Assembly (NCBI GenBank): GCA_964036045.1
Contig: OZ038379.1
Location: 66,526,001-66,590,000, forward strand
DNA: 64,000 bases
Source of the DNA: Eutreptiella sp. 'Long Island Sound 2002'
Lineage: Eukaryota > Protista > Euglenida
Reading direction: 5' to 3'
Part shown: positions 3,605-37,862 of the stretch, piece after piece
Position numbering within the stretch: the stretch's first letter is position 1
Layout of the letters: the number at the start of each line of letters is the position of its first letter
The notes under the pieces: model-generated
What the model was told of the DNA's origin: nothing
The model's database searches: none
The model's input: only the letters and a program-made list of their open reading frames with translations
Made by a program: the position numbers and the translations under genes

Positions 3605-3678
3605 ACACACACACACACATATAAATGTATACATACATACATACATATATAGTCATAGTCATAGTCATAGTCATAACC
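3605..3678. repeat. Compound microsatellite (CA)n-(TACA)n-(ATAGTC)4; possible 3' tail of the minus-strand LINE
   Basis: Tandem units read directly; tail interpretation is inference. Confidence 0.8.
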
Positions 3679-5559
3679 ACTTATCATGCCGTCTACTGGA
3701 GTTACCGGGCATCTTGGACCGACATGTGGTTCCTGCCTTGCTTGATCCCGTGGGTCCCAGGGCTGCCTGAGGTGGCCCATAGCATGACGGAGGACCCACA
3801 CGACCGGGGATACCGGCCAACCATGCATTGGGGGCAGTGGCAATCGCAGAGCGTTAGCCTTAGCAACGGCGACGAGCGCTGGCCCGTTGGATCGCCGGGG
3901 GTAATGGGGCAACACATAGCATCGTAGCAGCATAGCAGCAAGCAGCAAGCAAGGGCGCTTCTTGTGGGTGTGATGCAGCAACCAAGAAACAAAGTAGCAT
4001 GCATGCGGCGAAGCAAGAGCTGGCCCCATTATGGTGTCCTCCCCTGATGTGGTTTGGCATTTCATCTGCTCCGCCCATGTGTACCATGCAGCTGGTACCG
4101 CACATGCATAAGTCCACGGACGTGGAGCCATGGTTTGTGGGGAGCTCTAGCCTAGCCCCCAGCCTCCATTGCCCCCTTGTCCGCATCGTATAGGCCATCA
4201 GTACTATGTGCCCACCCCGGGCACCTCGTTTGGACCCCCAGACCGAGATACATCATTGTATATATGCAAGCGGTAATATTCCATTGCCACCAATGGCCGG
4301 CAGCCGCGCCCATGGTATACCGCCACCGGACCCCAAATATATAGGACTGTGTCCCTCTCCCCAAGGCAGTGACTTGAGACGACCCGTGGTAATTGTACAT
4401 ACTCTCTTATAATCTAACACGAGGGTCTACACGGGGGATGCCGACACCCTGTAGCATGAGTGGCACAACCCGTGAATTTGGCTGGCAGGGATTCGGGCTG
4501 GTGGGTGCCGTAGCTTGATTATCAACCCCCTTTAGGGGTACCCACCAGAATTTCGCTCCGGGCCGTGGTAACCAGGTTCACCCCATCTGGCCCACATACA
4601 GTGACCTGACGCCTACCCTGGACCCTTACCTTCAGCGATTGGCCAGCTCCGGTGGTTGGGCCATCTCCACCACAATGGCGGTCAAGCTGCAGGTTCGGCA
4701 TCCACCGACAAGGTGGCATGCCTACTTATAGCATGGGCCTATACCTCACCCCCCTGGACCTCTCATACAGGCACGATGTACAATGGTGCATCACGGGCCG
4801 CTCATGTCACTGTACCCTTACTTAGCTTTCCGTGCTCGCAATCACCACTAAGGTTGTGCTTCTGCTACCGCCACTGCGTTGCACCACCGCTTGCTCGCAC
4901 CGCCACCGCGCCGCCTCGCCACAACATTGGGCGCCGCGTCCACCCTGTACCCGCGAGTGCCTCACTCTGCGCCCATACTGCCATTGCCCCCGCCACCGTG
5001 CTACCGGCCATGTGTGCAAAGGTCAATCGGTTAGGCTATGTGCATGCCCGTGGGCAGAGTCCCTGTAGTTTGCTTGTGGGGCCGGGGGATGCCACAGTAC
5101 GCCCTTTGAGTTGTTTTAGGGGTCACAGGGACACTCCAGTACCTCCATGAGTGGTTCCCAATACCTGCTTGAGTTGTTCCTGGGGTCAAGCGGCAACCCC
5201 ATAGCGGCATGCCCCCGCTACCAAACCGCATACACGTACACCCGTGCAAGCCATAATGCCCGCCTTAGCCTTATTGGCCCACGTCCTTCTCCAGTCACCA
5301 TTCATCATCGATTTGTAACACCTTTGCATACGCAAGTGGCCATCCAAGCTGCGGCGACTGCACGCGCAGCCCGGCCCACCGAGCTGCTCCCCGCAGCCCG
5401 TGGCCAACACGAGTAGCGCCGGCATGGGAACATGTACTTATCTACTTAACCCCCCGGAGTAACCCGAGGATGAACCCCCGTGACTGCAGAAGCCAGGGCG
5501 CCAATATAGAGCCCGGTGCCATGGGAATACCCTACAGGGGTTTGGGCCTTATTACCCTA

Positions 5560-8423
5560 GTTGAGAAGACCCATGACACCTCACTATTCTAAGCGGCGAG
5601 CCCGGGCAGGCGGGCATAGCCATACTTTGTTCGGACCGTACATGCGGGGGCGGTACCGTGCACTATCAGGCCAGCACGACCTGCCACGTCGCGATGGCCG
5701 TCACATCACGCCCACCACTGCTGCACGCACAAGCCAGTACAAGGTCACGTCTCATATGCCATCTCCGTTGCTGCATCCACCAGACAGACAACACTCGGCA
5801 TTCCACCCACCGCTACACTTGGTCACATCGTATCATCCACGTACCCAGCCATCCCCCTATAAAACCGCCAAGTCCCCTCTGTGATGCATGAGCCAAAGGA
5901 CCCGGGAATCGCCGTCCAGTGCAGCCCACCATAGTAGCAAGGGAAGCACCGCAGTCGGGTCATCTTGGCGGCGCACTCCATCCACCTGTATATCCCGTAA
6001 GTCACGTTGGATTGCTTTCCACGCGCTCGACGACAGCTGTCCTCAATGCCGCGGCGCCCATATGGCTTTGGGCCACCCCCTGCCGGCGCGCTCTCGGCAT
6101 GACCCACATAGCACGGTAGAGGCACATTGGTGCATCCATACGGGCGCCGTAGTGCCGCAACCGCTACATACTAGCGGAAGTATCGACCGAGAGGGGACAC
6201 TGCCGCTTTCGCAGTGTTGAGACCACAGGTCCTCCCAAGCATCATTGCAGGCCCCGTGGCAGCGGAGAAGTGTAATCGTCAAGGCACAAGCGGTGGCACT
6301 ACTGTGCAAGCTCCGGTTCGCCTGGTCCCACGATGATGCCAGGGCGAGAACCGGGTGCCCGTCCAACCCTCCCGAGAGGTATTCGAGTAGCCGGGGCCAC
6401 CGCACTGCCCGGAGGCGCGGTGTACTCTGACATTTTTTTTTAGGTCCAAGGGGCCCAAGGGTTCCTTGATTTCACAACAACGAAAGTTCATCCCGCTCGA
6501 CGACATTCTCCGATGGTCCTGGATGAGCTCCGAAGTAGCGAGCCCCGCAACTAGCGTGGTTTCGTCCCTGACTTCTGCTTTTGCACCAGTGCTGGGTTGT
6601 GTCAATTTACCGGGGACTCCAAGCCCACGGGTGTCTCTTTAGAAAGAGAGATACGTTGCCACCGCTGAGGAGGGTGCGACTCTCATTGCATCCGCAGTGC
6701 ACCCGTGCGACACTCCATCAGAATCTCGCTCCCTATTCAAGCCCCCAGGCAGATCTTCCCCGAAAGTCCGTCCAGTAAATCCAAGCTCAGTTTCTCCAGC
6801 CCCTTCAAGTGCGTCCCCTGTCTTGGGGGATTGTTACCATGGCCCGGATGGGGCACGAAGCAACTCCAGGCAGTCCAAGAGACAAGGGATGTCCAAAGCA
6901 CACGATGCTTGTTCCTCGCGGTTCTCACATGTATCCCGAAGCCCTGGTAGTTCCACGATGGGAGCATACAACATGCCAGACCCAGGCGGTCTGTCTGTGC
7001 ATTCGGTGGCGTACAGTAGCTTCCATCCATAACCCTGCGGTATCTCCACGATGGCGTCTACTCCTGCTTGACTGGGGCTCTAAGCCAATGCGATCACCAA
7101 TCGCTGCCCCTAGACTGGGCCTCGAGTAACGGCTCTAGGTCCAAGGTATCCAATGTGCGACGGGCGTTTACTGACGCATTGTCATCCCCCTCCGGTAGCG
7201 ATAGCAACACCGCCGTAACGCGACCAGGTGCATCGTCTCCCTGGATCCGCGCAAGTTGCTTGGATCCCACCCCATGCACCTTTGCCCCTCCGCCACCGCG
7301 ACAACCCTTGGCGGCCGCCGGTCATACAACCACGATTGCTCGATGCCCAACACGCTGGCTATCGCTAGAACCGGGAGCGAACACAACGGTTGTTGGAGAC
7401 AGGCAGTACATCACTAAGCCAGCCCATGATGCTCCCGACTGCAGAATAGCCTACAAACACCTTGAGCCACGGTTCGTCATGGCCATCTCAGTTGCGCACC
7501 ATGGTACGGCGGATGGTGGCCTAAGACTACGCGGACACTTCACGGGACCGCGCCCGGAATGTGGCGAAGTCTTGGGCTACCCAAGACTCGATCCACTTGC
7601 TAACGGACTTTGCCGCTGCCGCCATCCATTGGGGAAATGTGGACATGGCCTCATTGTGCGTAATGTACGACTTGGACACCAGCAACGCATGCAGCGGTCC
7701 CCGCAGAAAGGCTGCTTGAACATCGCCAGGGAGGCCATGGAAAGGGCTACACGGCGGCAGTTACCTGACTCTGCCAGCCGGCGGACAAAATGGCGTATCA
7801 CCGCGCATGAATGGGCACGTAGCTTTCCTCCAGTCTCGCGACGGCAGCTGCATGGTCTTGGTGAGTCGATTATTTCTCCGGGCGTAGCCATCTTCCCCAA
7901 TCTGGATCACGTCCTCTAGAATCAGCCTTCGCCGGGCCTCGGGATGTGGCAATCAATACCCGACTCCCCCACGAACTGCGCTAGAGGAGATGCCTCACCA
8001 CATGCAATGACATACTGCCGCTCCCAGAGAAGGGAGGGGGATAGGAAGACACTACCTGCACACCACAACGGCTCGGGCGCGTCATCCCACAAAGAAAGGA
8101 CCTCCAGCCACGGGAGGCCACTGCGAAAAGCTACAGCCATGCCCTCTGTAGCCAGCGTGTTAGAATCCCTTTGCCACATGCTGGCTGGGGACTGATCGCC
8201 TGTGCCATGCCGTGCAGGCAGCCAATATTCGTACACACGCTGCACGACATTGAGTGCCAGCACGTACTGGGCCACGAGTGACACCTGACCCACCGCGTCA
8301 GCCCACACAACTGCACTGCCATGTTGTCGCACAGCACGTGGCCACTCTCCTAGTAGGTGCGCAGCAATAGCAGGAGAAGCAGCTTGGCAAGCCACTCCAG
8401 TTGTGTGTGTTGCTGCTCAACAT
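5560..8423 (-). pseudogene. C-terminal part of non-LTR retrotransposon ORF2 (post-RT region, probable RNase H, CCHC zinc knuckle), decayed
   Basis: Continues the reading interrupted by element A. VMDGSY (~7030), ETELG and RDSDG resemble RNase H acidic motifs (weak). VCSGCGTTAPVWMHQCASTVLC (~6210-6140) fits a CX2CX8H..C knuckle. Many stops and frameshifts. Confidence 0.55.
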
Positions 8424-8589
8424 GGGGTGCAGCCACGGAAGGGTGGCTTAGGAACCCCCCCCCCCAAAATGACATGGTAGTGCACCGCTAAAGTAGTGGA
8501 CCACACTTATTGGGGCTGTTTTCGGGGTCAAAATGAGCGTATCGGAGCTATCACCACCCCGGTTTCGGACCAAGGGGGTCAACTTTTTT

Positions 8590-8710
8590 CGGGCAGGAAC
8601 CCCCCTAGGAACCCCTACCTAGACCATTCCTGCACCCTTCTTGGACCCCTTTCTGGTAGGAACCCCCTTCCTAGACCCTTCCTAGACCCCTTCATGGGCA
8701 AGAACCCCTT
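8590..8710 (+). repeat. Subterminal AGGAACCCCC/CCCTTCCT motif array of element A
   Basis: Tandem motif copies; the AGGAACCCCCC motif is also part of the TIR. Confidence 0.7.
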
Positions 8711-9375
8711 CTTGTCCCTCAAAGGCAGCCCGGTTTTCCCAATGTCTGCCTGTCCCTTCGATGGGGTTTGGATGGAGGCCGTCACAGGCCCCGCCGGTAC
8801 ACGTGGCTGCTCCCTTCAGAAGGGGTAGACGTTCCAGGACACCGCCATCCCAACCAACTCCGCCGTGACTTGGCCGCCGGGCACAACCTCCTACGCTGAG
8901 CGATTGGAGAGCTCACCGGATTGCCGCGGATCGAAGCGGAACAACTTCCTCTTGGCTGCCTCCTTGTACCACCCCTCCTTGGCGAAACTGGCGGGCTTGG
9001 GCTTCGGGGCGGAGGGTGGTGAGCGGCTCGGCATCTACAGGGTGGGCAGCCATGTAGTGGCTGTGGATCTGCGCGTGGTCGCTGGGCAGGCGGGTGGACA
9101 GGGACTCCAGCAAGGAGGAGTAGTCCGCTCCGCCGTGCCGCACGTGGAAGGCGGTGATGTTGGGGTTGCGGCGCAATGTCTCCTCAATGAGGTTTGAGAG
9201 GGCATAGGGGTCCCTGTCGCGGATGAGGGACTTGGTGATGCGCACCCGGCCAATCGGCATCTCCAACAGGGGGTCGTCGTACGCGACAAAGAGCCGGTTG
9301 GAGGAGACAGGGAGGGCAAGCAGCCCGCTGGCCGCATAGGCACTCAGCACGGTGAGCCCGGGGCCGTCGCCGTCC
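8700..9375 (-). pseudogene. Coding-like fragment of unknown function inside element A
   Basis: ORF 8913-9350 (RLFVAYDDPLLEMPIGRVRITKSLIRD...) has GC3-rich codons and continues in a shifted frame toward ~8700; no recognised domain. Confidence 0.45.
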
Positions 9376-9394
9376 TACTGACTGCCCCAGTGCC

Positions 9395-10806
9395 GTGAAC
9401 AGCGACCCCGGCTACCTTGCCAGCCTGCAGCACTTGTTCATCCGGGGTTTTTCTGCGGAGTATGAGGTGGAGAAGGCGCACAAGGAGGCATTGGTGATCG
9501 CCGAGGAGCGCCAGGCCCGCATCTTCAACCACAACTGCCCAGTTGCTGGCCGAGCTCAAGACCCACCGGACCGCAAGATGGTGTGGGGGAAGCCGGAGGA
9601 CATGTCCAAGCATCCGGATGGGGATGAACACATCCAGCTGTGGGACCCGCCGCGCCTGACGCCCATGGTGACGCGGCTGAAGGCCAAGCTGGAGGAGATC
9701 TTGGGCAAGACGCTGCACGTCATGACCCAAGGGTACAGCGAGTCCATCACCCACGTTCGACAACTGCCGCACCGAGATTTGCCAACAGTGTCACTTCTTG
9801 TAGATGGCATCCCCCTCTCCGTGTTCTCGGCACTGTGGAAGGATAACCCTGACGATGATGTTTGCGCACAGTTCGTCGCCATGTCTGCCCGTGCCTTCCC
9901 TAGCCCTTGGAGCATCCATCGCATGCCAATGAAAAGGTGTTCCCTGTGGGTGATCTGCTCAACGGTGGTGCACAAAGGAGGCGGCCTGCCATTGGCTACG
10001 GAACCAGGGTCCCGCTGTATTATTGGGTTTTGTGGGCTGTCAACGCACACCGTGTCCTACACCACCACCCACGCCATCACCCCCCCCTTTTGGGCGCACA
10101 AGGCCGCTGTGAGTTGTGGAGCCCTCGGATGCCGCCGGAAGCCGACAAGTGAGTAGTGTTTTGGGTGTGGAGTCCACGTCCTTTGCCGCAATCACACGGG
10201 CATGGCGTGCAGCAAGTGCGACACTGAAACAGCAGCAACCGCAACATCCGATCCAAGGAGTGCCGAGGCCGCTGATCCGAGTCATGTCCCTGCTCTTAAG
10301 CACATGGTGACATGTTTGATTCCATCGGATGGGCAACGCTTTACACCGGGCATTACGAGGCAACGGCCGCACCACATGTGATTCCCGCTGACACAACCCC
10401 CAAGCCGGAGAGCTGCCCACTAGCGGGGCATGCACACCAGAGCGAGTGGCTGCCGTGGCCGAGATCGGAGCACCACGCCTTGTTGGTTACGCCGCTTGGG
10501 AGCATTGTGGTGGTGGTGAATAGCTGCTTCGGAGGATTCACCCGGGGTACCGAGGAGAACAGTGACTTTTTGGTGTACCGGATGGAGATGGCAGCAGCCG
10601 AGCCGAGACCCGTGGACCCGATCTTGTTGATGCCGGCCGGGGCGATCGTTCGCAACACCAAGGTGGCACAGGAGCAGGCCTTTTGGTGCGCATGCCACCA
10701 GGTTGACACTTTGGCCCCTTTGAGTCGGAGGGCCATTGGTTGGAGGGGTTTACAATGCAATGCGCCAAATATATGGTCAGTAGTGGTTGCCAAGGGTGAG
10801 CGGTAG
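9395..10806 (+). pseudogene. Cargo gene: 2OG-Fe(II) dioxygenase-like domain + Cys/His cluster + C-terminal domain (weakly SET-like); one in-frame stop and one frameshift
   Basis: QLPHRD (HxD, His codon 9770), PLSVFSAL, VVHKGG (distal His 9971) and GSRCIIGF (Arg 10013) match the HxD...H...R layout of double-stranded beta-helix dioxygenases. After the TAG at 10154 the frame reads CFGCGVHVLCRNHTGMACSKC; ORF 10312-10806 follows after a frameshift. Confidence 0.65.
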
Positions 10807-10883
10807 TCACAATGCAAGGGGAGGGCGGTTTGAGAGCTGGAACCGGGCACAGTGTGTGGGCTGTGGCATCCGCATGCCACTCA

Positions 10884-11125
10884 GGAACCCCCCCCTTCCT
10901 GCACAAGAGCCGTCCGAGGAACCCCTCAAGAACCCCCTTCCTGCATAGGAACCCCCCCCCTTCCTGCACAGGAACCATCGCAGGAACCCCCCAAAAACCC
11001 CCTTCCTGCACACGAACCCCCCCCCTTCTTGCACAAGAACCCCCCTTCCCGGACCCTTTCCCAAACCCTACCTAGACCCTTCCTGCACAAGAATTGCCCC
11101 CTTCTTGCATAGGAACCCCCCTTCT
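10884..11125 (+). repeat. Internal array of AGGAACCCCCC(C)TTCCTGCAC motifs in element A
   Basis: About 8-10 tandem imperfect copies, same orientation as the left subterminal array. Confidence 0.8.
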
Positions 11126-12284
11126 TGGACCACTTCCGGTTGCCTTCCATCACTGGCATTTTGCGTACTTCTCTTCAAGCCGACGTCCACGTGTACCCGC
11201 GGCTGGTCTTGAAGTCCGTCGACGAGCAGGAGCGGGCAGCTCCGCTGCCAGTAGCACCATCGGAGGCTGCGCGGACTGTGGATGGGCGAGCACCAAGTCT
11301 TCAAGACCCGCAGACATGGATGTTGCAATCGACGCTCACCATCACGGACATGCACAGTCCAGTGACCAGGCAAGGGGGCACGTTCTGGCATCGTGATTGC
11401 ACACTCACCGTTTGGAAGGGGAAAGCAGCCACTGCCCTGCAATTGCGGTTGCTAGGGGCATGTACGGACATGGCAAGACGTACGTGGTTGCGCAGTACTT
11501 GTGCCTTGTTGGCCAGGCCAAGGCCAGCAACACATCGTCTTTCTTGGTGTACAGCGAGCAGACAAGCTTCAAGACGCCGAAGAGTTTGGCAAGGCTAACG
11601 GGTTTTGATGCCGGTGTCCCCATTGAGATGCAGGACGCGGTTGACGAGTGGCTTGAGAAGTACCGCAAGCGGCAAGAACAAGGTCAACTGGTCGGACGCT
11701 CACACCCGAAGAAAGAGCTCCGCACAGAGGCAGGTACACAGCCACTGTGGTAGCAACCTGGGGCCCACGTCAAGTCGGAGCAATCAGAGAGGGCGGCCCA
11801 GGGATCCGTGAAGCGACCTGCCCCGATAACCGTCATCACCGACTCCCCCTCCAAGCGGCGCGTACCGGGCAGCCCGGGGCGGCCAAGTCCAATGGCAGTG
11901 GACACGGGGATAGTGGTCACGCAGCTGGCACGTGCGTTGCGGGAGGTCGTGCGCATGGCGTTGAAGGAGGTGTTGCCTGATGCCGTTGAGAAGGCGATGG
12001 CAAGTGGCGGCAAGACCCCGGTAGAACGGGCCATGGAGCACGCTACCAAGAAGGAGTGCGAAGCACGGGAACAGGTTCTGAAGCACGAGGCAACCATTGC
12101 AAGTGTGCGGGCACAAGTGATTGCCCTGGAAGACCGGTTGGAAGCTGCCGAAGACAGAGCGCGCGAGGCGCAGGCTGGCAAGGTCAAGGCCGAGGCTCTG
12201 CTGGCGGAGAAAGCTGCATAATGTGACCGGGCGCTGAGCATCCTCATCCGGACGTACGGCCAGGGCCCCAGCCCCAGTAGGTGA
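11125..12284 (+). pseudogene. Cargo gene with C-terminal coiled coil, unknown function; frameshift and in-frame stops
   Basis: ORFs 11125-11598, 11397-11753 and 11808-12221 join through one frameshift and TAG/TAA stops; heptad-like EQVLKHEATIASVRAQVIALEDRLEAAEDRAREA. Confidence 0.55.
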
Positions 12285-12884
12285 TGAGGAGTGGCGAGGC
12301 ACGGTGGTGTAGCAGCCTGGGCATGAGACGTGGAGAGACAACCCCTGGTGGCGCACTGAGAGGGAGGTGTGTCCCGGTGGTTGCAGTACACGCGTGCTGT
12401 GACCAGGCCACTCCCAAGATTGCACGCATGCATGCAAGGTTGTGCGAACGCGCCAAGTGGTGTGCGACGCAGTGCGCCCAAACAAATCCATCCCCTAACC
12501 CATAACCAATAACTAGGCCTTTTTGGCGTAATCCTAAAGCATCTCTAACCCTTATCTTATTTGGTGCGCGGCAGTCGCGTAGGATAGTAGTCACATGGTG
12601 CGCAAGGCGCGTAAGGTGGTGCCACGGGCGGGGAGCTTCACATAGCCTCACCCTTGGGGGCACTACCGAGATTTCCAAGCTTCATGTCATGAACTGTCAC
12701 CTTTCACTTCAAGTTCATTGATTCCTTCCTTCATGGACGCATTTGCATGGCATGTGTGGTTGGAATGCAGCCAGGGACACATTGTCTGGCCCCCATGTGA
12801 CAGCGGTGTTTGAAGGGACCCGGGTAACATCCGTGGTGGGTGCGATAGGGGCAGTACACCGAAACACCAGGTACAGGAAGGGGC

Positions 12885-13115
12885 GGGGGTTCCTGTGCAG
12901 AAAGTGTCTAGGAAGGGGTACAGGAACGGGCTTCTTGTACAGGAAGGGGGGGGGGTTCCTATGCAGGAAGGGGTCCAGGAACGGGTCCAGGAAGGGTTTT
13001 CCTGTGCAGGAAGGGGGGTTCCTGTGGGTTTACTGGGACAGTTCCTAGCCAGGAAGGGGGGTGGTCGTGTGCACGAAGGGCGTTCCTGCGGGGTTCCTGT
13101 GGCACTTCCTGGGCA
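12885..13115 (-). repeat. Internal array of the same motif in inverted orientation (GTGCAGGAAGGGGGGTTCCT)
   Basis: Reverse-complement copies of the 10884-11125 motif, ending just before the transposase ATG. Confidence 0.8.
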
Positions 13116-13119
13116 CATC

Positions 13120-14832
13120 ATGCCCTCACGATTCCTGGCAGGTTTTCATTTTCCTGTAATGCAAAAGCCCGTTGCCAATTTCTTTGCCAGTGTTGTTCGT
13201 GTGACCCCGTAATGGGATCTGGACGTTGATGCACGGCCACAAAGACGGAAATTAATTCGCGACGTTGTGGGCGCTGTGCTTGGAGATGACGACATCGTTG
13301 TGTGCACAACCGGTAACGGTATAGTGATTGCGTCCAGCAGCCACGAGGTGCGCGATGACGACGAGCAGCATGTTTCCGAGGAAGTGATCCAAGTGTTGCA
13401 AACGGCACACCACATGAGCCTCTCCACGCGCAACATGTTAAAATTGGAGCGCAATTGTACACGAAGGGAGTTATTGGACGGGCGCAGCAAGCTGTTGCCA
13501 TATGTCGCAACGGCCCTGGAGGTTTCATCGGGGGTGGTATCGCGCCGATCTGCCGTTGTATGTCCACTCCTTGAAGTAGTGCAAAGCCAGCTGACGTGGA
13601 GTAGGGCGTGCGGTATGTTTAGCATTTTGCCAAGACCGCCTCTTGATTATCATATGCGCAGATGCCACACCACTGTGGCAGACGTCGGCCACCAAGTACA
13701 TAATCCACGTGACCGTTTGGTCGGGGGTGTAGCGGCTGCAGGCGTCGTGCGACGCTGGGCGACGTGGTGGGCGCTTCATGGTCCGGATGACACGCACTGT
13801 CTCCTGGCCATTGACACTAAGGCAAACCTTAATTAGGATTTTTTGGATGTTTTGTCCACTGTGGATGTTGGTCCCTTAGGGAATCGTATCCCCAATGTAT
13901 GTGCCTTGATAGGTGATGGCAAAGCCATGCTTTCGGCCAATTACCACAAGGGAAAATGTTGGGAGGGCTGCCATTGCATTGATTCCTTGGCACGTGCCAA
14001 TTCTGTACCGGCCCAATGCAGGTGGGGCTCCTTTGTGAGGGCAATCGGACCATGCAAACGTGTTGGTGACGTGGAGCATGGCTTGTGTCGTATTGCGAAC
14101 GCAATTGTGAAGCGAGTCAATGAAACATTGAAAGATTTGATTGAAAACGGTCTGCCCGACGTCCCCCGTGCTGCAAGGGACGCAGGAAAAGGTTTGGTTT
14201 TGGAGCTTCACAAGCTTTTGGATAAGGTGAAAAACGATCCTCATGCCGAGCGGTTGGCTCCTAGGCCAACCAAGGCCGGAAAATTGCATATAACAGGTGG
14301 CAAAATATGGTTTGAAGACAGTGCATTACATTGCCGAGTTGTGGCCGTATTGCGGGACAACCTACCTGACGTGGCCTTTGGTGGCGTGAAATTTTTCCTA
14401 TTCATGAAGCATTTGTTATTATCAATGTATCGAATGCACGCGCTCTGGCGCAAGAGGGATTGGCGGACACAGTCTGAACTCAAGGAATTGGAGTCCGCGA
14501 GTGACCGTGTAGGGGAGTGTTGGGGTAAATTGCAATGGGGTGTGACATCTTGGGTACATTGGGCATGTTTTCACGGCGCATATTTTGCGTGTCGCTTTGG
14601 GAGTTTGTACATTTTTCGCAACATTCCGACGGAATACAGAAACCAAGCATTCAAGCGACATCTTAACAACTCGATGCGCGGTTGGTGCCTTCGGCGACCC
14701 CGCATCACACGCCTCGGAATGAGGCACGTGGTGCACACCGACGCATTGAGTGTCGGTTTGCAATTGTACGAGGCGCAACAAGGCCGCGGTGCGGCCGTTG
14801 TCAAGCGACGCAAGCGGCATGTGGACCAGTGA
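13120..14832 (+). pseudogene. RAG1/Transib/Chapaev-like DDE transposase (~570 codons, two in-frame stops)
   Basis: One frame from ATG 13120 with TAA 13210 and TAG 13834. Motifs parallel RAG1 core: LIGDGKAM (Asp 13915; RAG1 GYDEK), VGDVEHGLCR (RAG1 IDALHC), LLLSMYRMHALWR (RAG1 LMDLYLKMKPVWR), VHWACFH (RAG1 FHKTLAH), PTEYRNQAFKR (Glu 14632; RAG1 NESGNKLFRR). Confidence 0.8.
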
Positions 14833-22720: not shown

Positions 22721-22949
22721 GTTCCTACATGGTGGCAGGAGACAGTTTAGGGTCTACCAGCTAGGTGCTGCAGAAGGGTGGCAGCTTCTCGGGAGGCGAA
22801 CGGTGCCCCCTCGGCGTCCCGTCTCCATAACTCCCGGGCCCGCCATAAGAGGGCCTGTTGATCCATGATTTCCTCGGATTGAGATGCTTCTGTATCCACC
22901 TGCCCATACGTGTGTTGCGGATCCAGGCCTGCGGGCATGCGAACCCCCG

Positions 22950-23690: not shown

Positions 23691-23699
23691 AATACACCG

Positions 23700-27550: not shown

Positions 27551-28189
27551 ACGAAGAGGCGGGTGGAGGACCTGGTGCCCATCCATGTTTTGGGCCACGC
27601 GGACATGCGACAGGTGGGGGTGTTGGAGGGCACAGAGTTTTGGGCTTGTTTGCGGGTGCAACGGGGGGGTCTGGATTGGATCGTGGTCACCGCAGAAAGG
27701 CTGGTGCGGCGGCAGTCCAAGGGGTCTGCCTGCTTTGGGTCCTCTGAGATCACCCAAGGTTCGTGGGCGCCGTGCGCCGGGCACATAGGTCTTCGCCCGG
27801 GGACGAGGCGCCAGCACGAGTCGTGTTCGGGGCGGTGACAGCGGAGCCCCACAATCCGGGGAAGGATGTATGGCCGGTGGTCCCCATCAACATCTGGCAG
27901 CCTGAGCACGAGGCCATCATGTGTGTGGCGTTGCAAGGACATGCAGCAGCCCTTCCTCGGGCCCGGCGGCGCAGGCGTCCAGCACCCGGCCGGCGGCGTC
28001 CTTGGTGATGCTGCAGGGAGCCTGGTGGGCGTGGTGCTGCGTTATTGTAGCGTTGGAGCCACCCTCCTCTGCGTTGCGGCTGTACCACCGCGGAAGGGTG
28101 CCGCAGCTCGCGATCCGCGCGGCGGCCCTGGAGGCCTTGCAGCTTGGTACCCTGAGCGGCAACGGGGGCACGGCGCTGTTCCTCCAGGG

Positions 28190-28655
28190 AAAATTGGTGG
28201 GTGCTGCGGCGCTTCGGTTCTGCAAGAGCCACAGAGGAGACGCCTTCCGCCTGGTCATGGCAGAGACCATGGCGCTGTGGCTCCGGGCGTTTTCTGGTTC
28301 CCGGTGGACGCTCACGTGCAACCGGGAGCGGTTCGCCGACGTGGGGCGCCGGTGGGTAGAGGGACAGTTTCGCGTGGAGGGGGCGATGCACGTGCCACCA
28401 CCGCCCAGCGTGCCACAAGTCCGGCCGGCTGCCCCTGTGGTCTTTGTGGCGAAGGCGGTCCAAAAGGGGGTACCGAAGCCCGCCCCCATGAAGGACCTCA
28501 GTTTGCCTTACAGTAGCTACTCTAACATCTGGGTGGTATTGAAGCAGTTCGAGGGGCATGTGGCCACAGAGCAGCGTGGGGTGAGCAACGTGAAGGTGTG
28601 CCCCTGGTCCAAGCTGGAGGGGGCGGGCCAATGTCCATAGTGGGCCGGTGCCATC
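28190..28655 (+). repeat. Inverted partial copy of the 885-bp module
   Basis: The plus strand reads KLVGAAALRFCKSHRGDAFRL...KDLSLPYSSYSNI, which the other modules encode on the minus strand. Confidence 0.85.
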
Positions 28656-28949
28656 GTTGGGCATGCTCCTCCCATGGCTGGGGGGCGTGCGGGCTCTGCC
28701 TCTGCAGTACGGTGTTGATGTGCTGCAGCAACACCGACAAGATCAGGGACATCCCCCCCTCTGCAGCTGCCACGCGCAGCAGGGCGTGCCGCAGCCGCGC
28801 ATCAGGCTGCTCTATGTGGTGCCCGACGTCCGCCACCACCATAGGAGCGCGGGGCGCCGCGAAGGCACCCAGTGCCGCCGCCAGCAACTCCCTCAGTGAG
28901 GGCAGGCGCATGATCGGCCCCATGTCCTTGTTGACGACCATCGCTGCCA

Positions 28950-29420
28950 CCCGCTGCCTCTCCACCGTTGACAAAAGGTTGCCCGGCCTTAGCACGCGGA
29001 GGAGGGTACCAACTGTCGACAGCAGCGCGTGCATGCCGCAGTCTGTGTTGTTGCCTCCCGGCCGTCGCACCTGCGCTGCCCTGGCCACCGTTAGCAGGGG
29101 CTCCGCACCCGGCCGCACCGACCCTTGTCCATGTGCAGCGTGCTGCCCGCCCTGTCCCACGTGCGTGGCAACTGGGGCGAGCTGCCCTCCAACGTGGGCG
29201 GGCCTAGGGGGTTCACAATCCGCTGCACATTCGGGGCCAGGAGGTGGTGGGCGGTCCAGTGCCCCACATCCTGCTCCAGCGAGCGGTCAAGGTACACAAA
29301 CTCCGAGCCGCCCAGCTCAACATACTGAGCAACGAGGGGGGCGGCCGGGCTTTATTCGTTTTGCGGGCCCTCCCACCCGTCACCCAGTAGGATCATGGCG
29401 TGGCGGGCCATGCATCGCGC
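28950..29420 (-). pseudogene. Ulp1/SENP-like (CE clan) cysteine protease domain in the LINE polyprotein
   Basis: EFVYLD...GHWTAHHLLAPNVQRIVNPLG (His, then Asn at the usual Asp position), followed after a frameshift by AQVRRPGGNNTDCGMHAL (Gln and DCG nucleophile motif). Confidence 0.6.
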
Positions 29421-32400
29421 CGCATCCGCCACCAGCGCCACCGTCCGGTCGCATAGCTTAGCCCCGTGGTCCGTGGCCACGAAGAAGTGGTGCCTTGGCC
29501 CGTGCTCACCGCCGGCCCCATACAGCCCCTCCAAGGCGCCGACCATCTGAGCCGCTGGCGGGTCGGCGTTTGTGCAATCCCGGAGACAAGGAAGCGCCCC
29601 CGGGAGCTGTCTTCCAACTTCCCCTTGCCACATGGTGGCGCGCAGAGCCGAGAGTTGCCTCCAGAGGTCCTTGGCAATCGGGTCCCGCTAGGGTTGCGGC
29701 CTCTCGGCATCCCACTGGAGGGAAACCACGCCTACCTGGGTGGTTAGGGGCTCCGCAGAGAGCTGTAGCGCCACCCTCCCATCTGTGTGCACGGCCGTGC
29801 CACGCGGGGCACGGAAGGCGTGTCCTCCAACTCCGCGGATCGTCACCTAGCCCCATAAGATCACAATGGTCTTCAGCTGGGGCCCATGGCCCGACCGCCG
29901 CGGCCACGTCGCCGGGTGGGTGCGGGCCGTTCGCCGCCCACAGCCTCCATTGTACCCCCACTAGCAGGTCGCAGCCCGGGGGGCGTAGGGACGCATCCCA
30001 CGAGCCCGGGAGCTAGCGTTGGACCACGGTCCACACCTCGGCTCTGTCACCGCGCCTCAAGCAGAGCCCTTCGAGGAGGCCCTGCGTCTTGGGGCTGGGG
30101 AGGCGAACGGACCGGACCCCCATCCCCGGGCTTAGCCAGACCCCCGCTCACCCTCGAGCGGACGGACGTCCGGGTCTACCACCCCCAGGCAGGCCGCGAC
30201 CATGGCGAAATGTATGGACATAGTCCACGGCTCGACTGTTACAGGCTTGCGGGGCAGCTCCGGACAAGCCGCCACGGAGCCACCATCTCAGTCCTAGCTT
30301 AGCGCCCTCTCCCACCACTGTGTCGAGGTAACATTCGCCGCGGGCAGCGGCCAGGACAAGCACGTCGTCACGGCCCGAGCTTGCCATTGCTGGAGGTCAA
30401 TGCTTGCAGGGTGCGTGTGCCACGTGCACACCCACCCTAGAGTTGCCTCCTGGAGGGACATCATGTAACACCATACGACCATTAGGAACGGGGTGAGCAA
30501 GGCCGCAACGCCGCATAGCAACGCCACTGCCCACAGGACTCTACGCGTGGGCGACCGCATACCCCATTGCCCGTAGCCCTCTAGTCTGCGCCGCCTCCAC
30601 CACATTGCACAACAGTCCGCCTGGCGAGCCCAACGGCTGAAGCGGAGGGCCCCCACACGGGCCCTCCGCCCAAAGTCCCAAGGACCAGCAATAGGTCTTG
30701 GGGTACTCCCGGGGGCACTTGGGGTTGAGGGTGGCCAACGAAGCACGCGCCAGCCCTCGTGCACAACCCTTTGGCCCGGGGCCGGCAGGTTTCCGCCTCA
30801 CTTGCCTTGGGCCGCAGCTTTTCCGGCACTCCTGTCGACCACGGCCTTACTTCGGGTGCCCCCCGTGCGCCCGTGATGTCGACCTCGTCATTCTCTCCAC
30901 CTCCGATGCCCTGTGCCGTTGCCGGCCTATTTGGCCTCGTTCCTCATCCTCCAGACCACCGCGGGTCGCTAGCCGTAGCAAGAACCCGCGCGAGGGGTGC
31001 CCCCACGTGGGCTTCAACATCAAATGCATCGCCCCGCCGCTCCGCAGGTCCGGTCGGGTCCTGACCCATCGCATGTGGTTGTTGTGCCAAAGGTTCTACT
31101 TCAGTAGCCGCTCCTGCAGCTCACTACGCTCCGCCTCTCGATGTGCCTCTGGCCATGTCCCCCTGCACCGCATTGCCGTGCTGCTCGGGCTCCCGCTCCC
31201 CGGTACCCGCGTCCTGGCGCGTGCGTGCCTACCACCACTAGTAGCAAGGGGTCACCAACGCGGTTCGGGAGGTGATAGCTGCTGGAGGTGGGGGCAAGGA
31301 CGGTGTTGCCGAATGCTAGCGACAAGTGCTCCTCGCCATCCGCGCCGCGGGCGAGCAGGACCTCCGTTGCTTCTGGATGCAGCGCCACCAGAACGGCATG
31401 TGACTCGAACACCGAAGGCGTGAAGGGCTGCCTGCCGTGGTTGGGGAGCTAGTCCTCTGCGCTGCTCCTCCATAGGGCCACGTAGAGGCCCTCCTCCGTT
31501 GCACCATCCAGCCCCGCCGCCTCAAGCAGGCGCCGCGCAGCCAGACGCACCGCCAGCGGGAGGCGCTCCTTCGGCTCATCCCCCCGGACGTCCCCTGGAT
31601 TGTAGTCCCGGACTGCTGTGTCCCCCAATGCGACACAACTGACCTTGTCGCCCGGCATGGGCACATCCGCCGGGCTCACCTCCAGGGCGACCCTCTCCGG
31701 CAGCTATAGCTCAAAGCGCTCCACGGCGCCTGCCAGCGACGTCGCCACTTGGTGCCCTCGATCAGAGAGGCGGTGCTCCTGGACGCCCTCGGCGGCATGG
31801 AACCCGCAGTGCCGCCTCTCACAACTCCCCAGGAGAGGTCATGGCACTGCACTAGGCATGCATAGCAGGGGTGCGTTTGCCGGATCCATGTCCATGCCAA
31901 CAGAAGCTTCGGGCCGAGGGTTGTCCTCGTACAGGAGCGCCATTGTCGAGTCGCAAGGCCCGTACTCCATCTCCTCCTCCACGTCCTCCTTGGCCACGTC
32001 CAACGACTCTGCACTGTCTGCGTAGCTGCTCTTGCCGGCGGTGAATCCGGCCGCCGGGGGTAGGGTGCAAGGGGCCGCTCTTTTGCGGCCTCCCTGCCCG
32101 CCGCTTCCACCCTATCAAGCCGCACCCTGAGGTTGGCTGGCGACCGGGCACGATTGATGCCCGTGGCCATGTCCTGGTCGTACTCCAACCCGGCCGGACA
32201 CGACTCCCCGGGCTGCACCACACGCCAAACCCTCCACTCCCACATCCATTCTGCCACCCCCATGGCAGCCGCGTGCGCCAAGCCCATCGCCACTACTCTT
32301 GGGCTAGTCCCCATCCCGCTCGCCTAGCCAACCGGCTCCTCCTGCACTGGTCCACCCGCCTCCGGCTCCCCATGCCCTCGCTCCTCATCGGCACTAGCCG

Positions 32401-32990
32401 TTTGGCCCACCCTCTCCCCCTCGCCAGGTACCCCCCCGGCATCAGTGGGAACCTACGCCGACAGCGCGTACCGCACACACTCTGCTGCCTCCCGTCGGTG
32501 GGTAGCGTGGGCATCTTCGAGCAGCACTGTGACAATCGGGAAGGCCGGCCGCGGCAACTCCTCCCGCCGCCGGCTTTGCTGGTACTCGAACAGCGGTACC
32601 AGGGGTACCCCTTGACGATGCCAGCTTACCTCCACTGGTTGTCTCCAGGGTCCGTTGCATCGGGGCCACCCGTTCCACTGCACCTTCTTGCCGGTGTCCA
32701 CGTGTACTATTGGCGCTGGCCGCTGCGAGGCCTGTGGGTGGGCGGCCGGGATCCGCGAGCCTAGGGCCCTCTGCCCATGGGGTGCTTCCGCGGTGATTGC
32801 CGGAGCCGATGACGCCACGTGCCCAGGAGGGCTCCTTTAACGTCGCCAGAGGTGGCTGAGATGCTGTGTCCGTTGCCGGCCGCACCCCGGCCACGTGCGC
32901 TTCCTCCTTCGGTAACCCCGGCACGCGGGGAGTCCCTGGCATCGCCAGAGGCGCCAGCAGCGCTGGCTCAGTTGTGCCCTTGGTATTGCT
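29420..32990 (-). pseudogene. Decayed N-terminal coding region of the LINE polyprotein, no domain recognised
   Basis: Overlapping coding-like minus-strand fragments (e.g. 30294-30764, 31101-31412, 31449-31679), collinear with the protease and ORF1-like regions. Confidence 0.4.
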
Positions 32991-32997
32991 TCCCCTC

Positions 32998-34494
32998 TCA
33001 GCCGTGGCGCTTCAACCCGGGACCGCCGAGGGCGTGGGGGCCACCCTCAGGGGCACTAGCGCTGCCTGCGCTCCTGGTTACGTACCCAGCACCTCTTGGA
33101 GCGCCCGCGCCACGTGTGCCGGAGGCACCCACGTCGGCAATACTAGGGGTACCCGTTCGGCTTGTGTTGCCGGCATCCCCCCACACACCATAGGGGGTGC
33201 GGACGCCACATGTGCTTGAGGTACTCACACCGGCATCACTAGGGGCACCCGTGCTACGTGAGCAGGCAGCATCCCCACAGGTATTGCATGGGGTACCGAT
33301 GCTACATACATGACCTGTGCCGGCGCTGCCTGTGGTTGTGGCAACCCCGGCGGCGCCGCATGGGGTGCGTGTGCCACTTGCGGGGGCTGCATTGCATGCG
33401 CCGAGATGGTGGTTTGGCCGTTGGTGCTGGAGGTGCTGCGGATGTGCATGGTGATGTACCGGTTGGTGAAGGTGGTGGTGGAAGTGGTGCAGGAAGGCTG
33501 GGTGGTGATGATGGTGGCAATGCACCGCGGCAGGCCCCATCGGGGGGAAGTGGTGGTAGTGGTGATGATGATGGTGAGGGGCCCCAAAGGGCACGAAGGG
33601 CACAGGCGGGAGGCCCATAGGTGGGGGCACCCGGAACATGTGTGCCCCAGGCGCTTGCTCTATCCAGCCCGATACCGGTCGTGCTAGCTGCCGTCCACGC
33701 TGCGGGTCCTCCAACGGCCCGTAGTCCACCTGGAGATGGTGGAGTAGCCGCTCGAGGATGGTGACCCCAAAGGGTGCCGCGCCCGCCGCAAACTGTACCT
33801 GCACGTCTGTTGCATTAAGCGACGGGGGTCGCTGCCCAGCACTCGTCGCAGGCAAAGGCCGACAAAGTGGTCCCACCCGCTGTTCCTGGATGGGCGATAC
33901 GCGCGCTTGGAAGGCAGCGTATGAGTGCTGCCCATGTATGATGAGGTAAGGCACCGCGTCCCCCAAGCGACGGGCATGCCGCTGGAGGGCATTCAGTTCC
34001 GTGTGGGTGGTCGGGTTTGGAGGCAACGACACGGCGTTTACGAGGCCTAGGCAAGCTATGGAGAAAAGGGCCGGGGGGGGGGGGGCAGATTTGCCCTTGA
34101 GGCCAACCCCGTGACGTGGGGTTGCGGAGGTCTGTGGCGAGGGTCGGTGTGGGGCCGGGAATTGCACACACCGAGCACGACACTTAGCACTACAATAGAC
34201 CGTGGGCTTTTTGTCACCGCCTCCCTGCCACCCGCTTCCCCCTCTTCCTGTCTCTGCCGGCTCCCCTGTGCCCCCTTTCTGCTTCGGTTTTTCCGGCGTG
34301 GGTTGGGAGGGCGCCAGCATTGGTCCCCGTCCCTCGGTGCTTCCCCTTTGGGGGGCCGGTGCTTGTACTCCCCGTTGGAGTGTAACGCTGTTGTACTGGC
34401 TGTCCATTTGTACCCGCTTCGTACAACTGGACACACGCCGTATCCTGGTACGCCGACCCTTTCCCACACTGGGGTCCCGTACACTTTGGGTCAC
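32998..34494 (-). CDS. 498-aa ORF1/gag-like protein of the LINE (Cys cluster, His/Pro-rich low-complexity tail)
   Basis: Longest open frame in the window; lies 5' of the protease-APE-RT region on the same strand; VYCSAKCRARC cluster. ORF1 identity inferred from position only. Confidence 0.5.
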   Translation of the reverse strand: MTQSVRDPSVGKGRRTRIRRVSSCTKRVQMDSQYNSVTLQRGVQAPAPQRGSTEGRGPMLAPSQPTPEKPKQKGGTGEPAETGRGGSGWQGGGDKKPTVYCSAKCRARCVQFPAPHRPSPQTSATPRHGVGLKGKSAPPPPALFSIACLGLVNAVSLPPNPTTHTELNALQRHARRLGDAVPYLIIHGQHSYAAFQARVSPIQEQRVGPLCRPLPATSAGQRPPSLNATDVQVQFAAGAAPFGVTILERLLHHLQVDYGPLEDPQRGRQLARPVSGWIEQAPGAHMFRVPPPMGLPPVPFVPFGAPHHHHHHYHHFPPMGPAAVHCHHHHHPAFLHHFHHHLHQPVHHHAHPQHLQHQRPNHHLGACNAAPASGTRTPCGAAGVATTTGSAGTGHVCSIGTPCNTCGDAACSRSTGAPSDAGVSTSSTCGVRTPYGVWGDAGNTSRTGTPSIADVGASGTRGAGAPRGAGYVTRSAGSASAPEGGPHALGGPGLKRHG

Positions 34495-35029
34495 GTGACA
34501 AGCCCTTGCGGGGCTGACGTGTCTCCTGCCGGCCCCGACGGACGATGTGCCCTAGCCGCAGCGCCTCACTGGGCACGAACTGCAGTACGTGCCGTGGGGA
34601 GCGCTCCGTGTGAGGCCCGTTGGGCACCCCCCCGGCCCGGTGCCACCAAGTGCCGCTGGCCTACGGTTGCAGTCGTATCCCGCCTTCTTGCGGCTGCTCA
34701 AGCGGGGCCAATGCGGTCACTTTGGGGGGCGGGGGGGCTAACTCCTCCACTCAGGTTCCATGCCGGCGTCCCCCTGTGTTTGTCGGGTGTTCGTTCGCGG
34801 CCCGCGCTGTCCTCACGCCTTTTGGTGCCCGTCTCCCCCGCTCCCCCTCTCTCTCGCCCCCTCTCATGGGGTCGGTCTCCAGCCCGTATCCGGCCTCCAG
34901 TTGCACCCTGCTTCATGTGTATCCGGTGTTGGCGATGTGGTTCTAGGTGCTGCTCTGCTAGGCCTAGGTTGTGGCCCTGTTGGGGCCGTGGGTTAGGGGC
35001 TGGGTCTTGCTTTCCTTCCTCTTGCCTCT

Positions 35030-35460
35030 TTTATAGCGCACATCGAGCGCATGAGGCAGGGATTAGCGTTGGGTATGGCACGGATTGATGACACGCAAGT
35101 AGCGAAGCAATAAGCAGGACAATGTGTAACCCCGGCCTTGGGTTGCCCATGTCCCCCCACGTGAGCCTCCTGCCCCCCGTTCCCCTGGTTGCCTATCAAT
35201 CTCCGGAGTGCGTTCGCCTGACACTGGTGGTTCGTGTCCGTTAATTCTGCCTGGGTTGTGTCTGTCTTGGCTGTGGGGGCCGTGGGGTAGCGGGCGGGTC
35301 TTGTTTTCCACCCTCTTGCTTGTTCTGTAGCGCATTGAGCGTAGCAAGTAAGGATTAGGGTGGGATATGGTATGGATCTAGAACACGCAAGTAGCGCTGC
35401 AATAAGCAGGACAATGGGTAACTCCCCGGCCCCGGGCTGTCCCCATCCCCCCATGTCAGC
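35030..35460. repeat. ~295-bp tandem duplication in the putative LINE 5' region
   Basis: ACACGCAAGTAGCG..GCAATAAGCAGGACAATG at ~35090 and ~35385; further short repeats GGATGGCGCCGTTGGTGC at ~36220 and ~36310. Confidence 0.65.
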
Positions 35461-37862
35461 CCCCAGCCACCCGCTCCCCCGGGCGGTTGTCGTTCGCCGG
35501 CTTACGCTTACCCTACTTGGCGGTTCGAGTCTGCTAGTTCAGCCCGGGGTGCCTCAGCTTTGTCCGCCCCCCCCCCCCCCCCTATTCTTTCGTGTTGGGG
35601 AGCGTGGGCTGTGAAGGGGGGGTGATATGCAGGTGCCTATCATCTCACCTTCCAGTGCACACGGCAATTAGCAAGCACGAAGCGAATCAATGGGGCAGGA
35701 GGGCAAGAGATAGTAAGTGGTTTCCTAGTCACCCATGGCGGTAGTTGCCTCGTGTCGGCTGAGTCGTCAGTGGCCCATGTCTGCTCCCTCCCGTGCCCTT
35801 ATTACTTATTGGAGGAGGAACGTACCCGGGTGGGGACGGAAAATGATGATGTGCGGGCAGCGGGGAGGACGTATTGTATGCCATAACGGCTTCTTGCGCC
35901 ATCCGTCGCCGTTGTCGAGGGGAGGGCGCGTGCGTTGGCACCTAACAGCCAGGGGGGCGGGAGTCGACATCCCATCCTTTCCCTCGTGTCTGTGTCTCCA
36001 CTTCCAAGCGGACTGATACCGGTGACTCAGTCTCCGCCCGTTGGTAGTGGCGGCTGCAAAGCGGTCGTTCGCTCTCGCCCCCCCGGGTCACTGTCACACC
36101 CCGAGCGTGATGGTTGCCACTCAAGTTGTTTGGCTGTGATACGGGGAGGCGGGCGGGGGATTTTTGGCATCCCCTGGACATCTCATTAGGCTGCATAGTC
36201 CGTGCCGAAGAGGGCCCACCGGATGGCGCCGTTGGTGCTCTTCCCCTCTGCCCGCACGCACAATCCGCCATCCATTCATGCTTCATGAACACAGACACGG
36301 GGGGCCCAACGGATGGCGCCGTTGGTGCCCGTCCCCTCCGCGATGTCTCTCTTTTTCATCTCCATGCCAGCTGAGAAGGGGCACCGCGGTAACTCCCGGC
36401 ATATGTTCAAGGTGCGGAATGAGCATGACACTCAACACAGCAATTTGTGACCCCCTACCTTCGCCCCTCTCTCTTCCGCTCTGCATTGTATCCCTCCCCT
36501 CTTCCGCCCCTCCGCCTTCCCTGGTGCGCGTTGCACTCAGCACAACAACCCTTGTTCCCTGTCTCTCTCTTCCGCCGACCCAGTCCCCTCCTGCCCCTGT
36601 TGTTGCTACCCTCTTGCCTTGCCCCTCCCCCTTCTCTGCACTTGTCTCCCTCCCTACCGCTTTCCCTCTCGGCACCCACTCAGCACTACGCGTTGCGAGC
36701 ACCAGCTCACCTGCTCTTACTTGCCTGTGCCCCCTCCATGCGCGCAATTAGCATGACACCAGTGCCCGGCGAGTGCGGGGGGTCCAGTGGATGGCGTCAC
36801 TGGCGCCCGTCCCCTTTGCGCGCCACATTCATTTCGCGGTACGGGAGGCTCTGCGGACGGCACCACTAGCGCCCTTCCTCTTCGTGCCCACACATCTTGT
36901 CCCCATTTGCGCCCGTCCAAGCATCCATGGTCACATTTTTGTCTTAATGTGACTGCAATGAGATATACTTCATACCCAGGTGGTACACATAGCATGTTCA
37001 TGTACATCAGGCCATGCAATTAGGACAACTCGGAGCAGGGCAAGCTAGGCCTACCCTCTCCTGCTCCTTGCCCCTCCCCTTGGTCCCTAGCACCGCTGCT
37101 CCCCTCTCTGCCCTCTCCTCCCTCCGTGTGCCCCCTTGCCCTCGTTCTATCACTTAGCTCTCTCATCCCCCTCCCCTCTCTTGGCAGCGTCCCGTGCCCT
37201 CCATGGCTGCCCTCCCTTGCCTATTTGTGCCAAGGGCAATAAGCATGACAATGAGCGAAGCAATCAGCGCGACAGCCCCGGCTCTATCCTACCGTTTCCT
37301 GTTCTTCCCCGTGCTTGGCTAGTTGGGACTTTGCCCCGCCGGTATTCTGGCCCCGTTGCTCCGTCCTACCCCGGCTCCCTCTTTCTGTGCGCACACTGAA
37401 TAAAGCATCTAGCGAGGTTTCCCCTTTCCCACTCCCCCCTCTCCCTTTCCGCGCCTGCGCCTTGGGCTTCCCCGGTGCCCTGGCCCTCTCTCTCCCTCTG
37501 GCTGTCATGCCCGTACCACCTGTGTTTGCACACACAGTAAGCAAGGCACTAAGCACAACATTGAGCGAAGCAATCAGCACGACACTCACCTGCACTACCG
37601 TCATTGTCACCGTTGGACTGCCCCATGAGCTGCATGAGTTGCCGCCCCATGTGGGCCGCACGGTGCGGCCGCCCGCTGCTCCCACAGCCCCAGTAGGAGC
37701 CGCTGCCGCGGGTGGCCGGTCCATGTGTCGCGGGGGGCACGGCCCTGGTAGACCCCGGCTGCCCCCTAGCCAAGGTTTCACTGTACCCCCCGCGGCGCGT
37801 GGTCGCCGGGTGGTATCCATCAAAAGTTCTTGCAAGAGATGGAAAAAAGAGTTACATACATA

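Follow-up and report, generated by a model that had tools for sequence, protein, structure and literature searches.

A probable dead copy of a giant APE-type LINE with a putative Ulp1-like protease and a spliced-leader 5′ end in the genome of the euglenid Eutreptiella

The locus and its features

The window analysed here is a stretch of 64,000 nt (G000:C2:66526001-66590000) in the 2.28-Gb assembly of Eutreptiella sp. 'Long Island Sound 2002'. On its minus strand, from 37856 to ~3605, lies what is very probably one dead, old copy of a giant autonomous long interspersed nuclear element (LINE) of the apurinic/apyrimidinic endonuclease (APE) type, with a probable Ulp1-like protease. The region differs from its surroundings in base composition, with a G+C fraction of 0.56-0.67 across window 3600-37900 vs about 0.48-0.51 in the flanks. 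LINE-derived sequence amounts to ~21 kb and is broken by two foreign blocks (16704-21818 and 7952-16094). The features, from the 5′ end of the element to its 3′ end, are listed below; ORF stands for open reading frame, RT for reverse transcriptase and UTR for untranslated region.

37857..37893, minus: 5′ flanking (TG)n(TATG)n microsatellite, target or flank, outside the element (sequence read)
37841..37856, minus: 5′ terminus of the element, a decayed piece of the spliced leader from its 3′ part (compared with the 5′ end of a young copy and the published leader)
34036..37840, minus: non-coding 5′ region, ~3.8 kb, with internal repeats (homology to full-length young copies)
28645..34035, minus: ORF1 remnant, aa 2-1842 of 2,373 (tblastn against intact ORF1)
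30916-30716, minus: CCCH finger region of ORF1 (Pfam on an intact copy)
29264-29238, 29219-29202 and 29073-29029, minus: Ulp1-like motifs, respectively GHW, the Asp position and Q..DCG (motif search)
27560..28634, plus: inverted segment, ORF1 aa 1842-2200 (tblastn)
23796..27560, minus: 887-bp unit from the C-terminal part of ORF1, aa ~2054-2340, repeated in tandem x 4.25 (self-BLAST and tblastn)
23031..23721, minus: APE domain of ORF2, aa 3-238, with stops (tblastn)
21819..23088, minus: RT, N-terminal half, with the ORF2 linker, aa 300-720 (tblastn)
16704..21818, no strand assigned: foreign insertion B, a transposase-bearing element that splits RT (break in LINE collinearity)
16095..16703, minus: RT, C-terminal half, aa 722-923; its YxDD box, at 16496-16470, is decayed (tblastn)
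7952..16094, no strand assigned: foreign block made up of an 874-bp repeat (15220-16093), element A (~8424-15234) and 472 bp (7952-8423) (no ORF2 homology)
5842..7951, minus: ORF2 C-terminal extension, aa 1726-2228, with a Cys-rich motif at 6165-6118 (tblastn)
3673..5841, minus: 3′ UTR, ~2.2 kb (blastn collinearity with young copies)
3604..3672, minus: 3′ tail, with (GACTAT)4 at 3649-3672 and then a TA/TG microsatellite to ~3604 (compared with young-copy tails)

A decayed member of a young family

All comparisons use natural intact copies elsewhere in the genome as the reference, not a built consensus. In blastn and tblastn the window copy is collinear with these relatives from ORF1 to the tail, and homology to full-length young copies extends over its 5′ region as well. 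This bears out the original prediction of a minus-strand APE-type LINE running from ~37860 to ~3650. The suggestion that both microsatellite-flanked ends belong to the element also proves right: the 5′ end carries a spliced-leader remnant and the 3′ end the (GACTAT)4 tail.

The copy is 75-85% identical to its nearest kin, and self-BLAST finds neither long terminal repeats (LTRs) nor terminal inverted repeats (TIRs) in it. In Pfam, the window's 20 largest open frames on the minus strand give zero matches, because the copy is full of frameshifts and stops. RT motifs are visible by eye at 21873-22508, and this piece, used as a query against the genome, returns thousands of candidates. More than 100 of the RT matches have identical scores, all within an intact open frame of 2,234 aa, so the family is young in other places and the window carries a decayed copy of it. 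Its RT remnant is 74% identical to the intact ORF2 (tblastn). The sampled young copies are 99% identical to each other. Given the identical-score matches in intact ORFs and this degree of identity, activity has been recent, and the family is still active elsewhere in the genome.

Anatomy and length of the intact element

LINEs usually measure ~5-8 kb. The intact relatives of the window copy are ~20.8 kb long and consist of a spliced leader, a ~4.7-kb non-coding 5′ region, an ORF1 of 2,373 aa, one in-frame TGA, an ORF2 of 2,234 aa, a 2.3-kb 3′ UTR and a (GACTAT)n(TA)n tail. The full length follows from two distances. In at least nine loci on seven chromosomes, the RT match follows the junction of leader and element at a distance of 13.1-13.3 kb, eight of these matches being within an intact 2,234-aa ORF2, and a further 7.5 kb separates the RT point from the tail. 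The original prediction had put the span from ORF1 to the CCHC motif at ~16.5 kb and the total at ~22 kb. Intact copies agree with these figures, with a coding span of ~16 kb from ORF1 onward and a total of ~21-22 kb.

Copies truncated at different 5′ points have one 3′ end and tail in common. An 11-kb 'short form' and a 16.4-kb 'long form' were each considered as the full-length element and rejected, both being 5′-truncated copies that adjoin (TA)n. The apparent common starts of the two forms are an artefact of using a truncated copy as the BLAST query.

The type of element can be read from several features together: APE and RT in this order from N to C terminus, an RT of the non-LTR type, 5′ truncation with a common 3′ end, and the absence of LTRs and TIRs. 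These are the features of a LINE.

The 5′ end: spliced leader and non-coding region

In one full-length young copy the 5′ end comes from the spliced leader of Euglena gracilis, as given in PMC6242988, whose last 14-16 nt are fused to the element. Genome-wide, 24 nt of leader are fused to the 5′ sequence of the family at 90 loci or more, 32 of them without mismatch. The leader part is identical across LINE subfamilies whose adjacent 5′ sequence differs (ATGTCTTGCAG, ATCTCTTACAG, ATTTCTTGCAG). Such identity fits a leader that is renewed in each round, as trans-splicing of the element RNA would do, but it fits strong selection as well.

A different history would have the leader captured once and since then inherited through an internal promoter, with trans-splicing playing no role in the present life cycle. 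The junction itself speaks for this history: no canonical AG is found between leader and element, and the copy that begins with the leader has no upstream acceptor. Set against the identity of the leader across subfamilies with different adjacent sequence, these observations make a single capture a serious contender, somewhat short of an even chance, and renewal by trans-splicing is retained as the preferred account.

The region behind the leader is non-coding. In young copies its substitutions are spread evenly over codon positions and its indels break the frame, and a Pfam search of the long ORFs of the 5′ region on both strands gives zero matches. An extra gene in this region was rejected on these three grounds. 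The 5′ region of young full-length copies also contains tandem units of ~700 bp whose number varies by copy (e.g. L029 (rc) ~430-2100, and L030/L032). These variable units are reminiscent of the promoter monomers of mouse L1.

ORF1 and its protease-like domain

An ORF1 of 2,373 aa with an ATG start is present in a copy on C10. It has a His/Pro/Gln-rich repeat region, and its C-terminal unit carries a Cys/His motif. A CCCH finger at aa 1122-1145 falls below the Pfam cut-off and has weak matches in the PDB to the fingers of CPSF30/Yth1; beyond these, a search of the whole ORF1 against the PDB gives nothing useful. Between subfamilies, changes in ORF1 aa 1150-1680 are distributed over the three codon positions as 19/16/46, with no indels. 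This excess at third positions and the lack of indels indicate coding constraint and thus a real gene.

The HW..N and Q..DCG motifs that the original prediction had read in the window are found where it described them, at 29264-29238, 29219-29202 and 29073-29029. In intact ORF1 the corresponding residues are His1633 (HW), Asp1649, Gln1702 and Cys1710 (DCG). The four residues are nearly invariant in the family (A1), among the best conserved columns, and all are kept in a homologue of only 29% identity (P0189). The His is followed by the Asp after 16 residues, and the Gln precedes the Cys by 8 residues in a QQ..G..DCG context. This order and spacing fit clan CE, the clan of the Ulp1/SENP motifs. 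Protein-language-model neighbours in the Atlas point the same way, since 26 of the 30 named ones are Peptidase_C48 (PF02902), the top one scoring 0.94 with 181 features in common; according to the tool itself, a score of 0.9 is also attained by 4-10 of every 100 shuffled proteins. In the AlphaFold models, whose confidence is low, predicted strands carry the His and the Asp and a helix begins at the Cys.

A number of results count against a protease. Intact ORF1 has no Peptidase_C48 match in Pfam even at E<=5, and at E<=10 the family profile of the protease region finds no chain in the PDB. Searched with a profile, 1.84 billion proteins yield 117, apparently all fragments or relatives of this family, and no C48 protein. 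A genome-wide six-frame scan with PF02902 finds 41 other sites and not this LINE. AlphaFold models of the region built from 20 and 56 sequences reach a predicted local distance difference test (pLDDT) of 35 and 46, which makes them unusable, and Foldseek on the better of the two gives only noise. The match to a hidden Markov model (HMM) of C48 or clan CE by which the prediction was to be checked has thus failed to appear in Pfam, in the PDB profile search, among the 1.84 billion proteins and in the genome-wide scan. Support for the Ulp1-like protease is accordingly divided: the motif order and spacing, the conservation down to 29% identity and the language-model neighbours speak for it, and all HMM and profile tests for C48 against it.

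These negative results could mean that H..D..Q..C is no protease at all; the pattern would then have arisen by chance in a lineage-specific domain with another function, or be a relic without catalytic activity. The lack of any usable structure model and the capacity of language-model neighbours to mislead also speak for this reading. What makes it rather unlikely is the retention of all four residues where overall identity has fallen to 29%, in the order and spacing of clan CE. The predicted strands and helix at the expected residues, the concentration of 26 of 30 named neighbours in one family with 181 shared features, and the coding constraint on the region argue in the same direction. A CE-clan fold for the ORF1 domain is therefore considered likely, and from its sequence the domain is most likely a CE-clan (Ulp1/SENP-like) cysteine protease. 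Such a putative protease would cut the giant ORF1 protein or an ORF1-ORF2 read-through product, or it would remove SUMO or ubiquitin-like tags.

The PF02902 scan also identifies matches in repeated open frames of 1,182 aa and ~350 aa on several chromosomes (e.g. an array at C13 7.0-7.6 Mb, and C1 84.2 Mb). These represent other repeated genes or elements with a recognisable C48 domain.

The ORF1-ORF2 junction and ORF2

ORF1 and ORF2 lie in one frame and are parted by a single TGA, which is kept in 7/7 copies examined. The APE motif SWNVQG precedes the first Met of ORF2. Since the APE domain begins before this Met, ORF2 needs read-through or unconventional re-initiation. The shared frame, the one conserved TGA and the position of APE ahead of the first Met together lend new support to the idea of polyprotein processing.

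Two domains of ORF2 are recognised by Pfam in a young copy (L006:521-7222): aa 11-254 match Exo_endo_phos with E 4.2e-9, and aa 621-866 match RVT_1 with E 5.8e-19. In a PDB search the RT matches the structures of R2 and human L1 ORF2p with E 1e-14 to 1e-17. Further downstream, RNase H-type D/E/D motifs are seen by eye at ~aa 1399-1460. Pfam gives no PF00075 match in the intact ORF2; among the named Atlas neighbours of this region, 20 of 30 are PF00075, with a top score of 0.93. A CCHC motif (C-x2-C-x8-H-x5-C) is located at aa 1638, and ~600 further C-terminal residues include a Cys-rich motif at aa 2125. A restriction-like endonuclease (RLE) was sought in ORF2 aa 1000-2234 (1,235 aa), where neither Pfam nor the PDB, R2 included, gives a match, and no PD-(D/E)xK motif is seen by eye after the CCHC; the sensitivity of these searches is limited.

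One element rather than two

Could the 5′ region and the ORF1/protease gene come from a different element, or from a host gene, that happens to lie beside an ordinary APE-RT LINE? The empty first Pfam scans of the window ORFs, and two sampled young copies that begin abruptly in ORF1 or at its 5′ UTR and so resemble a shorter element, would suit such a composite locus, but it is very improbable indeed, since the two abrupt starts are simple 5′ truncations flanked by (TA)n, five other copies run on upstream through the same ~4.7 kb of common, repeat-containing sequence, no fewer than 10 further old copies in the subfamily of the window copy cross the junction of 5′ region and ORF1 without a break, the distance from leader junction to RT is constant across chromosomes, and the two ORFs share their frame over one conserved TGA. 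Several old copies start at different points within ORF1, as expected for 5′ truncation. The original prediction had looked to other copies for any sign that the protease, ORF1 or downstream parts split off into separate elements; these copies instead keep one continuous element.

Some further points weigh against the reading of the locus as a single giant LINE of this make-up. In the window the catalytic Asp position reads Asn, and the RNase H-like region and the CCHC motif are missing, so these domains are inferred from relatives. The RNase H-like call rests on motifs and on language-model features, whose 161 shared features fall below the 170 mark. No classical target-site duplication is readable, because TA/TG microsatellite makes up both flanks. 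ORF1 would have to be translated from behind a leader region of 4.7 kb.

Relation to known elements

Outside two related families that are apparently from the same genome, no protein found exceeds 28% identity to the RT. Given so low an identity to anything outside the element's own families, an undescribed clade is plausible from sequence comparison. In the literature, no description was found of a Euglena LINE with Ulp1 or a spliced leader, nor of this family.

LINE clades that bear RNase H have been listed (PMC4640811), and Ingi, I, Tad1, LOA and R1 serve here as the I-group comparison. The I group, which includes Ingi of kinetoplastids, has the same ORF2 order of APE, RT, RNase H-like domain and Cys/His motif. 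It likewise has two ORFs, 5′ truncation and a simple-repeat tail, and Ingi, like the giant LINE, occurs in Euglenozoa. The differences are also considerable. I-group elements measure ~5-8 kb vs ~21 kb for the giant LINE, which additionally has a CCCH finger and a protease-like domain in its 2,373-aa ORF1, ~600 extra C-terminal residues in ORF2 and a spliced-leader 5′ end.

An Ulp1-like cysteine protease domain is known from NeSL and Utopia-1_TSP, which are LINEs with a restriction-like endonuclease (PMC4640811). The domain is N-terminal in these elements, whereas in the giant LINE it lies deep inside a separate ORF1. They are short nematode elements with a single ORF; the giant LINE has APE instead, and its protease-like domain is too divergent for the C48 HMM.

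Dualen/RandI elements are also of unusual length and carry a cysteine protease. As large protist or algal LINEs with APE, RT and RNase H they resemble the giant LINE; they differ from it in their type of protease and in having a second, restriction-like endonuclease, none being detected in the giant LINE with the limited sensitivity noted above. The combination of APE with RLE and RNase H in Dualen/RandI is documented (PMC4640811).

The leader at the 5′ end has a parallel of its own. Dinoflagellate retrogenes are DNA copies that begin with the host spliced leader, showing that trans-spliced RNA can be reverse transcribed. There the carriers of such relics are host retrogenes, whereas here the carrier is an autonomous LINE family.

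A proposed life cycle and its meaning

A life cycle can be proposed from these features. The host spliced leader would be added to the element RNA by trans-splicing, and the ORF1 protein may bind this RNA through its CCCH finger. ORF2 would be made by read-through of the TGA or by re-initiation. APE would then nick DNA at TA/TG microsatellites, where the (UA)n tail of the RNA could pair and prime target-primed reverse transcription. Reverse transcription would often end early and leave 5′-truncated copies, and complete copies would retain the leader.

In a bolder version of this proposal no known autonomous LINE is larger than this family, and it is the first of APE type to be organised as a retrovirus-like polyprotein. 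Here a 4,608-aa ORF1-TGA-ORF2 read-through product would be cut by its own Ulp1-like protease, or the protease would strip SUMO from host silencing factors, and the RNA, rather than depending on a promoter of its own, would take its cap from the host spliced leader. Taken as a whole, this version is tentative and rather unlikely.

Typical LINEs are compact, with a small RNA-binding ORF1 and an ORF2 with endonuclease and RT, and the giant family is three to four times larger. It brings together features not normally met in one element: APE-type organisation, a giant ORF1 that probably encodes a Ulp1/SENP-like protease, a stop codon in frame between the ORFs and a host-leader 5′ end. If the protease is real, polyprotein processing by LINEs and deSUMOylation as an escape from silencing become directly testable. 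It would also be a tractable system in which to study the dependence of a selfish element on trans-splicing. Its fragments number in the thousands and clearly form a major part of this 2.3-Gb protist genome.

Damage and rearrangement in the window copy

The 3′ part of ORF1 is rearranged in the window. The tandem units in 23796-27560 are 88% identical to one another, each with the Cys/His motif, and they account for four tblastn matches to one ORF1 interval. An inverted repeat at 28192-28648 pairs with these units in self-BLAST. The intact copies that were fetched have one such unit, in forward order. The inversion is a minority arrangement: most copies of the old subfamily are forward, and at least one other old copy (C1:139.26 Mb) is oriented like the window. 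The 'tandem Zn-finger modules' of the original prediction are accordingly an 887-bp x 4.25 duplication of the ORF1 C-terminal part together with an inverted segment, and not modules of the intact element.

The two foreign blocks interrupt ORF2. At insertion B the LINE reference coordinates overlap by 5 bp at the break, which is consistent with a target-site duplication. At the second block, LINE homology ends at 16095 and restarts at 7951, and old-subfamily copies stop aligning at ~16095-16100. Other old-subfamily copies hold 2.2-2.4 kb between the points that match 16095 and 7951, so the window copy has lost ORF2 aa 924-1725 and, with this stretch, the CCHC (aa 1638) and the RNase H-like region. 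An RNase H-like domain and a CCHC motif had been placed within the window; this does not hold, since ORF2 aa 924-1725 is absent and there is no LINE homology in 7952-16094. The domain order that was claimed therefore stands for ORF1, the protease-like domain, APE and RT; the zinc-finger modules reduce to a private duplication, and the RNase H-like and CCHC parts are lacking in this copy.

Motifs of RNase H-like appearance, read by eye at ~15300-15400 and at 8250-8416, were considered as parts of the LINE and rejected, because 15220-16093 is a separate repeat family and 7952-16094 has no LINE homology. The 874-bp repeat at 15220-16093 is distinct from both the LINE and element A and has at least three other copies with identical boundaries. 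Its minus-strand translation shows RNase H-like motifs by eye, and it may be a fragment of another retroelement. The 472 bp at 7952-8423, between the LINE break and element A, have no match among 40 scored candidates, all of them LINE copies (other families may not have been scored).

The present state of the copy is best explained by several events after insertion. The inverted segment and the four-fold tandem duplication arose in the 3′ part of ORF1, a transposon hit the inside of RT, and 2.4 kb of ORF2 were replaced by the 8.1-kb foreign block. Many stops and frameshifts built up as well.

Target sites and associated repeats

All young copies examined share one terminal sequence, behind which come (GACTAT)3-4 and a microsatellite of the (TA)n type. 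Two sampled 5′-truncated young copies are flanked by (TA)n.

A repeat family with a 1.2-kb palindromic arrangement adjoins the 5′ flank of the LINE at window 37892-39526 (inverted repeat 38334-39526). In three other LINE copies (c5a, c8 and c9) the same family sits directly behind the (TA)n tail, and it also precedes c5a. Its TA-rich end may be a favoured target of the LINE.

A 5.4-kb element at G000:C5:76259381-76264756, minus strand, adjoins a truncated LINE copy. Its first ~200 bp, with the leader end, and its last ~390 bp are common with the giant LINE, and its interior is different. This element may be a non-autonomous derivative mobilised by the giant LINE.

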